Source: Vitrella brassicaformis CCMP3155
Taxonomy: Eukaryota > Protista > Chromerida
Assembly (NCBI GenBank): GCA_001179505.1
Contig: CDMY01000963.1
Location: 1-7,845, forward strand
DNA length: 7,845 nt
Direction: 5' to 3'
Shown here: positions 1,793-7,845 of the stretch, piece by piece
Numbering within the stretch: position 1 is the first letter of the stretch
Layout: every line of letters starts with the position of its first letter
Position numbers and translations under genes: made by a program
Notes under the pieces: generated by a model
Databases searched by the model: none
What the model was told of the DNA's origin: nothing
What the model saw: the letters and a program-made list of their open reading frames with translations, nothing else

Positions 1793-3548
1793 CTATAGGA
1801 AATCAGTATTACTGCCACCTAACAAGAAGTTGCCTGCATTCCAAGAAAAGAGTGCGTCTCTGGCGGCGCGGCCCTTCTTGTCGACAAAGCGGGCGAGGAC
1901 GGACAAAGGGGCATTGCCGTCTCTCAGGTTGGGCGTATACACCAGTCGGGTCAGCTGCAGGCCCTCGTTGAAATAGATCAAAAACCTGGAGACACACAAA
2001 GATCTCTGCCGGTGTGCTGTGCGGGTCACTCGCATAACACACATACCCGGCTCCGGGAAATGCATTGATGGCATCCAGCACACCAGAAACTGTACGCAAG
2101 ATACAACACAGGGAAGTAAAGCATGGATATGCGCCCACCAGTCCCTCTCACGCCTTCTTGATTTACTCTGCATTGCCGCAGCTCTGGCGTTGAAGATCTC
2201 ATCAGGTCCGAATTGTCCATTGTCCGTATTGAGGAGCACCCAGAAGGTGGTGTCGGGGCGGATGGCAGCGAGGTCGGTCTTGTTGCCCGTGAAGTCTTCA
2301 ACGCCGTTCGGGCCGAATAGTTGAATAGCAAGGAAAATGAGTGCGTCCACGTTGAAGTCACCGCCACTACATACGTAACAAGAGGGGGAAGGGGGAGAGG
2401 GATACACGCAGGCATGCACACACAGGTCAGTCATCGTTGCCTTTTTATGTTTACTCAAGGAAGATTGTGTCGTCTGTGAAGGAAAAATCAAAAATCGAAT
2501 CTTCCTGCAGACAACAAAGGCGCCGCACCCAGTGCAGGCGTACGCTCCCTCTCTCTCTCTCTTTGTCTCGCCTACCAGCGCTCCATCGTCGATGTCGACC
2601 CCAGAGTAAAAGATTTGGTCTTTGCCGCCTCTTGTCTCAATGAAGTCCTTGTTGGCACCGGGGACAAACTTATCATCACTGAGGCACACACAGACGCACA
2701 GCACAGAGAGGGTGAGAGAACGAGAACCGTGCGTGCGTGCGTGCGTTGTATCATGGTGGTTGGTCGAGCACATCGCATACTCGTCTTGGCCGAGAAAGAT
2801 GTCCGAGAGGGGTGTTCCCGGGGTGGCGCCGAACACCGCCAAGTTAATTACTACATCACCTACGAGAGCCACACACAGAGCCGACTGCGCAGGGAGGAGC
2901 CAGCCCATGCGGGGATCCACGTACCGAACACGAAGTTGTCTTTGACGTATTTCTCAGCGTCGGCGATTGCCGCCTGGATGTTCTCTGCATTCTCGTTGCA
3001 CCTCCCGGCCACGATTGCCGCATCGGCACCCTCAGAACATGTGGAGACGTCTCTGCACACGCAAACAGACATAGCAGAACAGACAAGACACGACAGACCG
3101 TCAGCCACTGAGGCTGCAAGGCGATGTCTGTGATGCATGACCTCGCGAGCACCTTGAGGGGGGTCGTGTCGCTCGCCAAATCTTCCGAGAAGACGAGACC
3201 TTCAACCAGAGACCGACCGTCATGTCATGCATGTGTGCACTTTCGCCGACGGACGTCTATCACTTACGATTGAGATTCAGGCCCCCTGTGAAATCGAGGC
3301 TGTCCTTCGTCTTGACATTAGTGTACAGGAACACGCCCCGGGCATCCATCCCTCGAACCCTGATTGTTTGCTATCTGCATGTCACACAACAGGAGAAGAG
3401 ACAGCCACCGGATGACTGTTGAGCGGCCGACCCAACCACGGCCGTCTTTGTAATGTGATACCCACCAAATCGGCGGCGATTCCCGCATTGAACTGCACGC
3501 AGCACAGCAGCACACACGGAGAAGTTTCTCTGTGTCTTTCACCAGCAT
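1793..3548 (-). CDS. Multi-exon gene for an RTX-like (putative Ca2+-binding) protein with a duplicated bacterial-type C-terminal module
   Basis: Hand-spliced exons, 5'->3' on minus: [3548-3543 ATG CTG, tentative], 3492-3466, 3374 or 3370-3268, 3199-3109, 3052-2925, 2859-2781, 2678-2576, 2504-2455, 2366-2167, 2089-2047, 1985-1793 (TAG). From 3268 down, all eight introns (68, 56, 65, 102, 71, 88, 77, 61 nt) are GT-AG and phase-compatible, giving a stop-free protein: ...DARGVFLYTNVKTKDSLDFTGGLNLNRLVFSEDLASDTTPLKVLARSCITDIALQPQDVSTCSEGADAAIVAGRCNENAENIQAAIADAEKYVKDNFVFGDVVINLAVFGATPGTPLSDIFLGQDDDDKFVPGANKDFIETRGGKDQIFYSGVDIDDGALEDSIFDFSFTDDTIFLDGGDFNVDALIFLAIQLFGPNGVEDFTGNKTDLAAIRPDTTFWVLLNTDNGQFGPDEIFNARAAAMQISGVLDAINAFPGAGFLIYFNEGLQLTRLVYTPNLRDGNAPLSVLARFVDKKGRAARDALFSWNAGNFLLGGSNTDFL*. 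The 3109/3052 junction has a weaker donor (GTGGCT). The 5' exons above 3340 are uncertain. The product call is motif recall, not a database search. Confidence 0.78.
2549..2562. repeat. (CT)7 microsatellite, intronic
   Basis: Lies in the 2575-2505 intron. Confidence 0.85.
2609..2818 (-). repeat. Four consecutive degenerate RTX-type nonapeptides, split by the 2780-2679 intron
   Basis: GTPLSDIFL / GQDDDDKFV / PGANKDFIE / TRGGKDQIF: Asp at position 6 and a hydrophobic residue at position 8 in all four, matching the GGxGxDxUx register. The glycines are only partly kept. Confidence 0.6.
2728..2746. repeat. (CGTG)4+ microsatellite, intronic
   Basis: Lies in the 2780-2679 intron. Confidence 0.85.
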
Positions 3549-4210
3549 TGAGTGTCACGGTGGATGGTGTGTGGGGCAGAGAGGCCAATGATTTTCGGCC
3601 GCCTAGTTGAGAAGCTGCGCACCAAGGCTGTGTGGGCAGACAAGTCGTAGAGTCAGGTGATGGGATGGGTGCGTGCCCGTTTGTCTGTTGCATTGGCGCG
3701 TAGTGCGAGTTTGCGTGTGCGTGGTGGGCGGCGTCACTAGAAGATGCGCTAGGCGGGCGCCGAGGATGGTGCTGGCATGTTTGTCGCGCGATTGACAGTC
3801 GATCGATCGACACAATTCATTTCATGAGAGACCATCAGAGTCTGCCTGCCATTGCGCTATGTGTCAATGCATCTCCCCCTCGTCGAGGGGCAGGGGGTGG
3901 TCAGGCAGCCTGGAGGGGTGGATAGCTTGATGGATGACTGTCATTGGCTGCACCGCACTACTAACAGTCGCATTATCTTTCTGTTTTTCATCCAGCAACT
4001 GGCGGTAGCACAAAGTCCAATTGCATCTCATCTGAGATAAATGGCCGAGGAAGCGCAGTCAGCTCTAGGCCTCGTTTTCCAAAGTGCAGGAGAACATCAC
4101 TCAGCTGCCATCTGGATTAATTCGAGGCAACTCTTCATGTAATTAGGCTTTCCCTTCTCCAAACTAGCCAGCAGACTCACAGAGAATCGGCCTCAAGACC
4201 ATTCATTGAG
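2853..4210. repeat. Copy 1 of a 1358-bp direct duplication
   Basis: Matches 4513-5870 at a constant offset of 1660. By eye I found only 4 differences: 3452a/5112c, 3821-3822tt/5481-5482aa, 4156t/5816g. Confidence 0.97.
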
Positions 4211-4212
4211 AA

Positions 4213-4512
4213 NNNNNNNNNNNNNNNNNNNNNNNNNNNNNNNNNNNNNNNNNNNNNNNNNNNNNNNNNNNNNNNNNNNNNNNNNNNNNNNNNNNNNNNN
4301 NNNNNNNNNNNNNNNNNNNNNNNNNNNNNNNNNNNNNNNNNNNNNNNNNNNNNNNNNNNNNNNNNNNNNNNNNNNNNNNNNNNNNNNNNNNNNNNNNNNN
4401 NNNNNNNNNNNNNNNNNNNNNNNNNNNNNNNNNNNNNNNNNNNNNNNNNNNNNNNNNNNNNNNNNNNNNNNNNNNNNNNNNNNNNNNNNNNNNNNNNNNN
4501 NNNNNNNNNNNN
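4213..4512. other. Assembly gap (300 N)
   Basis: Run of N. Confidence 1.
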
Positions 4513-5208
4513 ACATCACCTACGAGAGCCACACACAGAGCCGACTGCGCAGGGAGGAGCCAGCCCATGCGGGGATCCACGTACCGAACACGAAGTTGTC
4601 TTTGACGTATTTCTCAGCGTCGGCGATTGCCGCCTGGATGTTCTCTGCATTCTCGTTGCACCTCCCGGCCACGATTGCCGCATCGGCACCCTCAGAACAT
4701 GTGGAGACGTCTCTGCACACGCAAACAGACATAGCAGAACAGACAAGACACGACAGACCGTCAGCCACTGAGGCTGCAAGGCGATGTCTGTGATGCATGA
4801 CCTCGCGAGCACCTTGAGGGGGGTCGTGTCGCTCGCCAAATCTTCCGAGAAGACGAGACCTTCAACCAGAGACCGACCGTCATGTCATGCATGTGTGCAC
4901 TTTCGCCGACGGACGTCTATCACTTACGATTGAGATTCAGGCCCCCTGTGAAATCGAGGCTGTCCTTCGTCTTGACATTAGTGTACAGGAACACGCCCCG
5001 GGCATCCATCCCTCGAACCCTGATTGTTTGCTATCTGCATGTCACACAACAGGAGAAGAGACAGCCACCGGATGACTGTTGAGCGGCCGACCCAACCACG
5101 GCCGTCTTTGTCATGTGATACCCACCAAATCGGCGGCGATTCCCGCATTGAACTGCACGCAGCACAGCAGCACACACGGAGAAGTTTCTCTGTGTCTTTC
5201 ACCAGCAT
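4513..5208 (-). CDS. Partial second copy (5' exons only) of the RTX-like gene; probably allelic or an assembly duplicate
   Basis: Same exons shifted by +1660: 5208-5203, 5152-5126, 5034-4928, 4859-4769, 4712-4585, and 4519-4513 running into the gap. The only difference within the gene span (5112) is intronic. Confidence 0.5.
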
Positions 5209-5870
5209 TGAGTGTCACGGTGGATGGTGTGTGGGGCAGAGAGGCCAATGATTTTCGGCCGCCTAGTTGAGAAGCTGCGCACCAAGGCTGTGTGGGCAGA
5301 CAAGTCGTAGAGTCAGGTGATGGGATGGGTGCGTGCCCGTTTGTCTGTTGCATTGGCGCGTAGTGCGAGTTTGCGTGTGCGTGGTGGGCGGCGTCACTAG
5401 AAGATGCGCTAGGCGGGCGCCGAGGATGGTGCTGGCATGTTTGTCGCGCGATTGACAGTCGATCGATCGACACAATTCATAACATGAGAGACCATCAGAG
5501 TCTGCCTGCCATTGCGCTATGTGTCAATGCATCTCCCCCTCGTCGAGGGGCAGGGGGTGGTCAGGCAGCCTGGAGGGGTGGATAGCTTGATGGATGACTG
5601 TCATTGGCTGCACCGCACTACTAACAGTCGCATTATCTTTCTGTTTTTCATCCAGCAACTGGCGGTAGCACAAAGTCCAATTGCATCTCATCTGAGATAA
5701 ATGGCCGAGGAAGCGCAGTCAGCTCTAGGCCTCGTTTTCCAAAGTGCAGGAGAACATCACTCAGCTGCCATCTGGATTAATTCGAGGCAACTCTTCATGT
5801 AATTAGGCTTTCCCTGCTCCAAACTAGCCAGCAGACTCACAGAGAATCGGCCTCAAGACCATTCATTGAG
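4513..5870. repeat. Copy 2 of the 1358-bp duplication, bounded by N gaps on both sides
   Basis: About 99.7% identical to 2853-4210. It begins right after the 300-N gap and ends right at the 23-N gap. Confidence 0.97.
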
Positions 5871-5893
5871 NNNNNNNNNNNNNNNNNNNNNNN
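5871..5893. other. Assembly gap (23 N)
   Basis: Run of N. Confidence 1.
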
Positions 5894-6193
5894 TATGAAG
5901 GCATATTGTGTAATTACATGTTTTCGTAGTCAACGAGCGTTGGGAATTGTCTTTGCATGTATTGTTCCCCTTTGCTTGCTTGATACGAACTGATGCTTAG
6001 ACGAACTTCGTCGCCCGTTCATGTATCTACTTAAAACTACTTATTGTGTAATTGCAGCTAAGGTGCAAATTGAAGACCTGAACGCAGTTGTCATATCTCA
6101 CTTTGCACTATCGTCCTCTCTCCATGCCTGCAGCAGCATGTCATTCTTGCCGGGAATCCGTCAATCTGTGGAGGGACTACTTTTCCAAAGTGT

Positions 6194-7845
6194 CTTCATG
6201 AGAAGGAGCGTCAGGAGCGTTTCAATCAGATATCATGGTGGTGGCTTCTTATCTTACTCTGGGAGAGGTCAACTTGAAGGGAGTGAAGAAAAAAATAGCT
6301 ATTGCGATTGAGATGGCTTCCCTCTTACCTGTGCTTTCTTTGATGAAAGAATAGAAGAAGTAGGAGAAAGAAGTTTATGCCAAGCAATGAACGAATGCTA
6401 TATCTATGAATGCACGTTTGGACTTGGAGTGTGTGTATATAATGAATGTCTCTATGCGCACATGCACCGAGGCATACTCACCGCATTGAGTACAGACTAC
6501 CACTTCGCAATTGCAGGCGGAGGTCAGCACAGCGCGACGCTAGTTGCTCCTCGTCCCTGTGACGTCGCCAGAGAGGGAGAAGGGGGAAGGGACCACCACG
6601 AGAAGGAGTGGAATGGGAAGGAATAGTACCTCACGGCCGCCAACCTGACACTCACACTGTACCTATGGTAGTGAACGACTTACTTACCCGATAAGGCGGG
6701 ATTAAGGCCACCAGAGGGTGACAGTAGCTCCACTGTGCCTCCACAACACCGATGAAAACGTAACAGGAGAAGGAGCAGACGTAGATGAGCCTAGGTGGAA
6801 CGTGCAGAAAGGACGAGAGGGGAAATTACTTACCCTGGTCGGATATCAGCCTGTGCAAAACCTCTCAGCCTTCGCATCACCAGATTAGAGAGTCCACTCG
6901 GAGCGCCACACGGGCATCGGCGACCGGAAAGGTCTACCTGGACTTGGGCCCTGCCATACACACGAAACAAAGGAACTCAGGTATCTTGATGAACATCAGG
7001 TGAACACAAAAGCCTGCTGAACGAGCCAGGGACGACAAGGGAAGGAACGCAGACCCATAGCTGGACTTGAAGGGACCTTGGGCTAGCGTGCCGTCCCGGT
7101 TGCACCTTCCAGCTGTCACAGGGGGACCTCACATGACACTCTCGATGAGCCCATAGACTCGGATGGCAGAGAAATGGGAAGGAAGGCTTTTGGATGGTCC
7201 CAGGCCTCTCCTGTTGACCCATTCAAGTGGTCGTCGGGCTCATGTCACTCAGAGGAAGGTTGTGCCCGCCAGTGGGCCACCAAAAGCTCTCCAGCTCAGC
7301 GGTTTGAGGATGCCAAACGGTGGAGGTCCACCTACCAAAGGATGGGGGCAAACACGGCGAGAAAGGCGGTGAGGAGATCAGGGGAGTGTCAGGGGAGTGA
7401 GGTGGCCCGAAATATGAATCTCAGGATGGACTAAAAAAGAAAAAAATATAGGCAGAAAATGGGTCCCCTCTTCCCATTTTCCCTCATAAATTCCGGCGGT
7501 GCAGTGCGACATTCTCCTGTATCTTGAGCCACGCGTTCGACGCAAGCTGGTCCTCTTCTTCGGTATGCAGCCAGTGTCGATCTTCAGCATGGCCATTTGA
7601 GCTCCAAACTGCTGCAAGTCAATATACAACCTCAGATGCATTGGTGGTATCCATCTGTCATGCAGCGTGGCGTACTTTCTCTTCAGTCTTGTAGAAAAAT
7701 GCCTCAACTTTCAGTCCAGAGGGTGCAGAGACATGAGAGCCAATGCACGTAGGAGAGGAGTAAGGGGCTGCATTTACCTTAATGTCGCGAGATCCTCGAT
7801 GGCCTCATTCTGCTTTATGAAGCGCTCCGGATTCCATCCCTGGCG
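6194..7845 (-). other. Array of minus-strand splice signals (possible gene, decayed gene or spliced non-coding transcript)
   Basis: Intron-like GT..AG segments: 7777-7708 (GTAAAT), 6833-6791 (GTAAGT), a donor GTAAGT at 6687, a donor GTGAGT at 6481, 6328-6273 (GTAAGA) and 6257-6194 (GTAAGA). Exon-like peptides: RQGWNPERFIKQNEAIEDLATL (7845-7778), VWSSNGHAEDRHWLHTEEEDQLASNAWLKIQENVALHRRNL* (7611-7484), DEEQLASRCADLRLQLRSGSLYSM (6556-6482). The simplest joins hit in-frame stops. Confidence 0.3.

Follow-up and report, generated by a model that had tools for sequence, protein, structure and literature searches.

What is a protein with bacterial-type RTX repeats doing in a spliced gene of a eukaryote? 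The RTX beta-roll is a classical bacterial domain linked to type I secretion, and to our knowledge eukaryotes do not have this secretion system. The question is raised by a small scaffold from the nuclear genome of Vitrella brassicaformis CCMP3155 (contig CDMY01000963.1), which was analysed over its whole length of 7845 bases and is called the window below. For a gene on its minus strand, a previous sequence-only reading had proposed that a bacterial module was acquired by horizontal transfer, gained introns and was domesticated and repurposed. The joint explanation we consider best, with a probability of about 0.7, is that the family was acquired from a bacterium, that its intact members in Vitrella are Ca2+-dependent proteins secreted through the endoplasmic reticulum (ER), and that the copy in the window is a truncated and decaying paralogue.

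The rebuilt gene joins nine coding exons, at GT-AG borders throughout, into a single open frame closed by the stop at 1795-1793. The chain of the annotated open reading frame (ORF) spans 1793-3349 and, as a database match showed, its spliced product is the annotated 311-aa protein of Vitrella brassicaformis CCMP3155, P0001. Sequencing runs were examined as contigs: runs X1 and X3 contain the unspliced genomic form of the gene, and run X5 contains spliced (cDNA, complementary DNA) contigs. The latter present joints for nine introns (1986-2046, 2090-2166, 2367-2454, 2679-2780, 2860-2924, 3053-3141, 3200-3267, 3375-3465 and 3493-3622), and a tenth (2505-2575) is implied by the 50-nt spacing of the pieces in cDNA contig 17. 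At least nine introns had been counted from the letters alone, with a search for spliced junctions suggested as a check, and both the count and the junctions were found. The acceptor of exon 4 is at 2859, 9 nt upstream of the position modelled first (2850): the cDNA joint 2859/2925 ruled out the latter and agrees with P0001. The spliced run also contains two joined forms of intron 2679-2780 at similar depth, 2678/2781 and 2675/2781 with CCA between, a minor variant on the acceptor side. The motifs quoted in the sequence-only reading are all there and in the order it gave, from the nonapeptides through DSIFDF, VLLNTDN, FNARAAAMQI, GAGFLIYFNEGLQLTRLVYTPNL, VLARF and ARDAL to NF. The exon 3492-3466 is spliced and real, but it precedes the annotated start and is not in frame with the 311-aa ORF.

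A word search with P0001 returned one close relative, P0002, a complete 504-aa MMETSP transcript ORF (SRR646408) which is 55% identical to it and presents a signal-peptide-like N-terminal leader followed by two copies of a unit of ~200 aa; P0001 aligns to P0002 only from residue 197 of the latter onward. A word search with a long ORF including intron translation had found only the protein itself, and one with a full-length alignment was dominated by generic RTX proteins and gave no further eukaryotic member. A family profile built from P0002 and P0001 was then run against 1.84 billion representative proteins and matched 228 of them at E≤1e-3 (106 at 1e-10 and 30 at 1e-30), many over several stretches; the top match, a 1771-aa protein from a metagenome-assembled genome (MAG) of Sphingopyxis, has 12 matched stretches and an E-value of 2e-158. 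We inspected the best 150 of these 228 matches, few of which carry a taxon label. Scanning one genome per bacterial species revealed 77 loci that encode the unit: they belong to alphaproteobacteria (including Erythrobacter, Sphingopyxis, Sphingomonas, Caulobacterales and Parvularculaceae), to cyanobacteria (Geitlerinema, Vacuolonema, Cyanothece and Gloeobacteraceae), and to Bryobacteraceae and other Acidobacteriota, Burkholderiales and Myxococcota. Significant bacterial relatives, and specifically alphaproteobacterial and cyanobacterial ones, are what the sequence-only reading had expected a search to return. The only non-bacterial sources among the traced matches were Vitrella proteins, Vitrella-type MMETSP transcripts and one metagenome contig; for the P0002 transcript and for this contig, GC content at third codon positions and sequence identity point to Vitrella or a close relative. 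One of the Vitrella proteins, P0155, is a more distant paralogue of 644 aa, also with a signal-peptide-like leader and two units. In all Vitrella copies the helical tail of the unit-1 core contains two Cys residues (STC ... GRC; P0001 48-66, P0002 242-257, and P0155) that the bacterial units lack; they could form a disulfide which was gained when the family changed to the oxidising route through the ER.

The unit is composed of a degenerate RTX beta-roll and a conserved alpha/beta core of ~100 aa, the signature of which is FNA(R/G)xAA ... GAGFF(V/I)YFN ... (N/T)RLVY ... NF. In an alignment of 43 units (A2), Vitrella and bacterial units are 31-38% identical, and 13 columns are invariant and 25 nearly invariant, most of them retained in P0001; the consensus runs from RTX-type turns through DxIxDF, DRFxLD, NVIVLQD, FNARSAA, GAGFFVYFNS, NRLVYS and AIDAL to NF. 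A hidden Markov model of the unit matches P0001 residues 91-310 at positions 3-199 of 202 with 187 bits, that is, over its full length and with the motif order kept. In P0001 the unit alignment shows four degenerate nonapeptides, which keep Asp at position 6 in all cases and Gly at positions 1, 2 and 4 in two, one and one of the four copies, respectively. Because these glycines are only partly retained, P0001 has no Pfam match even at E≤10, whether to PF00353 (HemolysinCabind) or to PF08548; bacterial relatives do match PF00353, in the head region. The serralysin C-terminal domain PF08548, which is the source of the UniRef name of P0001, reaches its gathering threshold with neither Vitrella protein, P0002 scoring 17.2 bits against a cut-off of 20.7. 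Single exons gave no match in Pfam or NCBIfam, and for the whole of P0001 the only NCBIfam match, PueAB (E 0.024), was set aside as being at chance level. The ~100-aa core has no covering model in Pfam or NCBIfam, also not when the bacterial members are scanned, in agreement with the sequence-only reading, in which no Pfam family could be named for the module.

Structure prediction, suggested earlier as a way of looking for a beta-roll and a C-terminal domain, returned both. AlphaFold2 with alignment A2 modelled the window unit (P0001 residues 92-311) with a pLDDT of 91.6 and a pTM of 0.89 as a beta-roll followed by a mixed alpha/beta core, residues 1-90 of the model forming short strands at regular spacing; the window unit is thus predicted to adopt a parallel beta-roll fold. 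With this model Foldseek retrieved PrtC and serralysin (E 2e-4), and the exhaustive VIA-align comparison placed the C-terminal region of RsaA at the top (Z 12.5), followed by LipA (11.6), an alginate epimerase, the AlgE6 R-module (10.5) and CyaA block V (9.0). At the sequence level, P0001 alone as a query gave no match in the PDB. The unit profile matches solved RTX domains over its first ~93 positions (CyaA at 3e-34, PrtC at 1.7e-14, alkaline protease, AlgE R-modules and lipases), and its core part matches no sequence of a solved structure.

In bacteria the core turned out to be a repeatable domain, probably exported by more than one route. The 150 listed proteins contain 171 full copies, 75 of which end at most 40 residues from the C-terminus and 96 of which are internal. 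Simple sequence rules assign at least two GGxGxD motifs to 63 of 144 bacterial proteins, 54 of which do not have a signal-peptide-like N-terminus; a further 28 bacterial proteins are small (about 90-300 aa as called), with a single unit and a PEP-CTERM-like tail, which in P0064 was confirmed by Pfam and NCBIfam models. At three of 16 bacterial loci an ABC exporter gene directly follows the family gene, and at two of them (L002 and L003) HlyD comes next. As judged from these sequences, some bacterial members are likely type I secretion substrates and others likely Sec-dependent. A description as a general extracellular module suits the unit best: the core is not merely a type I export signal, because 96 of the 171 copies are internal and some carriers have a Sec signal peptide or PEP-CTERM. 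The sequence-only reading, which saw in the C-terminus a module of type I secretion, was therefore right about its bacterial type, but the simple secretion signal does not hold for a core that is so often internal and also present in Sec and PEP-CTERM proteins. Nor do the intact Vitrella paralogues, which have signal-peptide-like leaders, look like type I substrates, which an ABC/MFP/TolC system exports through an uncleaved C-terminal signal and which have no N-terminal signal peptide. P0064, P0069, P0070, P0074 and about 24 others combine a signal peptide, one unit free of canonical RTX repeats and a PEP-CTERM anchor, many being about 200 aa long. Small PEP-CTERM members of this kind at loci L032, L033, L039, L042 and others (Acidobacteriota, Burkholderiales) make up an unnamed exosortase-substrate family having the core domain.

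Where did the Vitrella family come from? Since among the relatives traced the module is otherwise found only in bacterial surface or secreted proteins, the family probably came from bacteria, and horizontal transfer from a bacterium is the most likely reading of its origin on the sequence evidence. In a maximum-likelihood tree of 157 units (~215 columns), unit 2 of P0002 is the sister of the window unit (support 100), and the two sit on a long branch inside a set, supported at 96, of 75 otherwise bacterial rows, the labelled ones being mostly alphaproteobacterial; the bacterial module in an intron-rich eukaryotic gene proposed at the outset is in agreement with this nesting. When the three Vitrella unit-2 sequences were constrained to form one clade, the log-likelihood was 89 better than in the free quick search (p-AU 0.98); this favours one acquisition with later duplication, although the long branches call for caution. 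Further information on age came from a metagenome contig of 2615 nt (ENA ERZ893784, k147_5733390; L080), the sequence of which points to a Vitrella-like alga in that environmental sample. On it lies a homologue of the two-unit gene that has introns and is about 60-70% identical to P0002. This homologue has eight of nine comparable intron positions and phases in common with the window gene, and no intron inside GGLNLN/R; the introns are therefore older than the split between these copies, whose identity is now ~60%. Intron positions could be compared with L080 and not with P0155, for which tblastn on its own locus gave too few segments. P0155 lies on a scaffold of 452,855 bp, between genes for a subtilase, a PRP4-type WD40 protein, ribosomal protein L16 and ClpP.

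Several points weigh against an acquisition from bacteria as drawn here. The immediate sister group (an Erythrobacter MAG and relatives), from which a donor lineage would be read, is supported only at 58-73; the Vitrella branch is long, and long-branch attraction could help the clustering; and with the best 150 of the 228 matches inspected and few labelled, a second eukaryotic lineage could have been missed. Another origin would be an old eukaryotic family, or a plastid-derived one that came by endosymbiotic transfer from cyanobacteria or red algae, inherited vertically and since lost from most lineages. Cyanobacteria do carry the unit, and intron positions conserved between diverged copies indicate that the genes are not recent arrivals. 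We nevertheless regard this origin as improbable: neither the traced matches nor the word search provided a eukaryotic source other than Vitrella, the MMETSP transcripts of Vitrella type and the one Vitrella-like contig, and the closest labelled rows of the tree are alphaproteobacterial, not cyanobacterial. A bacterial contamination of the assembly would explain the bacterial type of the module, and for the genome paper 620 bacterial scaffolds were removed from the Vitrella assembly (PMC4501334). Its likelihood is practically nil, being refuted by the spliced contigs: the gene has ten spliceosomal GT-AG introns that are spliced out in cDNA contigs, the GC content at third codon positions matches that of the paralogous transcript, and the paralogue P0155 is embedded in a eukaryotic scaffold of 452 kb. 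The argument that the introns speak against contamination, made from the letters alone, is strengthened by these data.

The state of the window copy is a separate question. As judged from its sequence, it encodes the last two thirds of the unit-1 core and a full unit 2, with no signal peptide: P0001 keeps only core positions 47-84 of 99 of unit 1, which leaves it short of the complete units of intact members. When compared to the model of P0002 (pLDDT 83, pTM 0.82), P0001 lacks the leader and the entire beta-roll of unit 1, and the core of that unit is without its first strand and helix. A tblastn search of the window with P0002 gave nothing for residues 1-174 of the latter beyond weak cross-matches to the unit-2 exon, and the unit-1 beta-roll was not found. 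Traces of the lost part remain upstream of the ORF. The relic unit-1 frame extends through the first 25 nt of the exon 3374-3268, where it reads IANNQG... like P0002 and L080 and is not the frame of the ORF: between the start of this exon and the VFLY codons there are 40 nt, one base more than a single frame allows, and the relic reading ends at a stop. At this place the L080 homologue reads IAANYGGGNVRGVFLY in a single frame. This frame break is real, because neither the DNA contigs of two studies nor the cDNA contig show an indel there. A second stop lies 10 codons upstream of the FNAG exon in its frame (in exon 3623-3788), and three ATGs precede the annotated start. In-frame joining of the FNAG exon to the ORF through a donor at 3461 and an acceptor at 3359 was tried and rejected: no combination keeps the frame, and the cDNA supports only 3466/3374. 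The runs differ by four coding variants, three of which change the protein, one of them (G22E) within the conserved GGLNLN turn; four are too few to measure selection, and they are in line with relaxed constraint. Because of the missing signal peptide and first beta-roll, the frame break in the relic exons and the upstream stop, the sequence of the window copy indicates that it is probably a truncated, decaying paralogue, still transcribed, and it shows the turnover of the family by duplication followed by truncation and decay. "Domesticated and repurposed", as the sequence-only reading had it, fits the intact P0002 and P0155, with their signal peptides and two units, but not the 5'-truncated and frame-broken copy in which the module was noticed.

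Decay has evidence against it too. The 311-codon frame is open across nine exons and its transcript is correctly spliced, which would also fit a functional short protein; combined with a complete unit 2 modelled at a pLDDT of 91.6, this makes it conceivable that the 311-aa product works as a shortened, signal-less protein with a new intracellular or unconventionally secreted role. We consider this unlikely, although less so than the other alternatives weighed here: the product has no signal peptide, its first 90 residues are a domain fragment devoid of the first core strand and helix, the upstream ATGs and the predominance of non-synonymous variants argue the other way, and RTX domains remain unfolded at cytosolic Ca2+ levels. 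The second difficulty is the scaffold itself, where the N gaps (300 N and 23 N) and a duplicated block of 1.35 kb leave some room for an alternative 5' end elsewhere, and where contigs end, in every run, within the repeat at 3550-3800 and at 4143. The truncation could then be an assembly artefact, with an intact two-unit gene having its 5' exons in the N gaps or on another scaffold. This is a very improbable account, since a cDNA contig links the FNAG exon to 3623-3788 with a stop in that frame, and the break in exon 3374-3268 appears in the DNA contigs of two studies and in cDNA alike.

The explanation considered best can be spelled out as a scenario in which homology, predicted fold, splicing and the signal-peptide-like leaders of the intact paralogues are observations, and secretion, Ca2+-dependent folding and a role in the wall are drawn from RTX biology. 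The family would have been acquired once from a bacterium; after the transfer it would have gained spliceosomal introns, exchanged bacterial export for an ER signal peptide, and undergone gene duplication. To judge by their leaders, the intact two-unit paralogues P0002 and P0155 would be secreted through the ER. By analogy with known RTX blocks, the Asp-bearing turns would bind Ca2+ outside the cell, where calcium is high, and the beta-roll would fold against the core, which may act as the C-terminal cap that RTX blocks need. Two units might then stack into a rigid rod and serve as a wall, surface or adhesion component. More tentatively still, Vitrella may have made a bacterial surface unit into an ER-secreted, Ca2+-dependent wall or surface family, the core being a general extracellular block exported in three ways (type I, Sec with PEP-CTERM/exosortase, and as a lipoprotein); we hold this wider proposal to be possible rather than probable.

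The exons of the window gene can be assigned to parts of the two units, all on the minus strand. From the 5' side, the most upstream cDNA exon (3623-3788, cDNA contig 18) has no homology to the family in translation and, by the depth table, overlaps a high-copy repeat. It is followed by the relic exon 3466-3492, delimited by joints 3374/3466 and 3492/3623, which encodes FNAGIAADL, the first helix of the unit-1 core, and matches P0002 residues 175-184. The exon 3268-3374 (joint 3374/3466) contains the annotated start ATG (3349-3347) and reads GVFLYTNV...GGLNLN. The exon 3142-3199, bounded by joints 3052/3142 and 3199/3268, encodes a unit-1 core strand (LVFSEDLASDTTPLKVLA), and the exon 2925-3052, placed by the exon chain and cDNA joints, encodes the Cys-bearing helical tail of that core (STC...GRC...KDNFVF), 66% identical to P0002 residues 239-282. 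Unit 2 starts its beta-roll in the exon 2781-2859 (GTPLSDIFL, GQDD...; joint 2859/2925) and continues it in 2576-2678 with the degenerate RTX-like nonapeptides PGANKDFIE and TRGGKDQIF, an exon taken from the chain and the joint 2678/2781, and in the region where the profile head matches solved RTX domains. The exon 2455-2504 carries the motif EDSIFDFSFTDDTIFL (DxIxDF); it is part of the exon chain and is implied by the pieces of cDNA contig 17, which are spaced 50 nt apart. According to the AlphaFold2 model, the exon 2167-2366 (joints 2089/2167 and 2366/2455) covers the end of the beta-roll head and the start of the core, with VLLNTDN and the FNARAAAMQ helix. A further part of the core, SGVLDAINAFPGAG, is encoded by 2047-2089, between joints 1985/2047 and 2089/2167, and the last coding exon, 1793-1985, ends it with FLIYFNEGLQLTRLVY ... 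VLARF ... ARDAL ... NF, as given by the exon chain, the joint 1985/2047 and alignment to bacterial units. The cDNA contig over the last exons (1880 nt) extends ~1 kb past position 1500; the region downstream of the stop, window about 500-1792 on the minus strand, is either a 3' untranslated region of ~1.3 kb or an overlapping neighbour transcript.

Concerning the rest of the scaffold, a 1.35-kb block is present twice: alignment showed that 4513-5870, which lies between N runs (4213-4512, the 300 N separating the two copies, and 5871-5893) and repeats the upstream exons on the minus strand, is a near-identical second copy of 2859-4212, with four substitutions (3452, 3821, 3822 and 4156), all non-coding. 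The doubling probably arose in scaffolding or from collapsed haplotypes; that the block was duplicated in tandem very recently is less likely. Over 3500-3865 the contig depth is 3 to >100 times that over the gene in all four runs, the spliced one included; many short high-depth contigs end there, and a variant form has 92 other letters in place of 3578-3615. This region is a dispersed, expressed repeat that overlaps the most upstream exon of the gene. An ORF in 1382-1762 was Pfam negative, and 5894-7845 contains no recognisable gene, five ORFs being negative in Pfam. The scaffold end, 7845-7780 on the minus strand, is an open stretch with a WNPERF-like motif leading to a GT donor, possibly the cut end of another gene.

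The copy in the window is itself of minor importance. Of wider interest is a spliced eukaryotic family that appears to have kept the RTX fold and swapped its export route, a bacterial surface module refitted for the eukaryotic secretory pathway, which enlarges the set of extracellular domains of bacterial type in the free-living organisms most closely related to apicomplexan parasites. A literature search gave no description of RTX-type proteins from chromerids or from other algae, nor are they mentioned in the Vitrella genome paper. The core is a widespread bacterial domain, now delimited and still devoid of a Pfam or NCBIfam model, which is present in likely type I substrates and in PEP-CTERM proteins; it merits a family definition and a solved structure.

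How does the Vitrella protein compare with known systems? The beta-roll itself is not new, UniRef already labelling P0001 as serralysin C-terminal domain-containing. With the RTX beta-rolls of type I substrates (serralysin/PrtC, LipA, CyaA block V and AlgE R-modules) it has in common the turns which keep their Asp and a predicted parallel beta-roll; the head of the family profile matches these domains by sequence and the model of the window unit by structure, and some of the bacterial relatives are encoded directly upstream of ABC exporter and HlyD genes. It differs from them by its degenerate repeats, which have partly lost their glycines and leave P0001 with no match to PF00353 or PF08548, by a eukaryotic, intron-bearing gene with an N-terminal signal peptide predicted in the intact paralogues, and by the lack of a protease, lipase or pore-forming part. 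The best structural match over the whole unit is predicted to be the S-layer protein RsaA of Caulobacter crescentus (5n8p_A residues 858-1024; Z 12.5 over 157 residues, with a root-mean-square deviation of 2.9 for the model), although no sequence relationship to it is detectable and it is absent from the profile search of solved structures. RsaA is a Ca2+-dependent structural protein of the cell surface exported by type I secretion. Finally, the family to which the window protein belongs is that of the uncharacterised bacterial "calcium-binding proteins" with GAGFFVYFNS ... NRLVYS ... AIDAL ... NF, known from alphaproteobacteria, cyanobacteria and PEP-CTERM proteins of Acidobacteriota: the unit and its motif order are the same, identity is 31-38% over ~200 residues, and units occur in tandem. 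Whereas the bacterial members present canonical GGxGxD repeats or a PEP-CTERM anchor and from one to twelve matched stretches per protein, those of Vitrella have two units, a Cys-bearing linker (STC...GRC), introns and putative ER signal peptides, the window copy, with its partial unit 1 and no signal peptide, being the exception.

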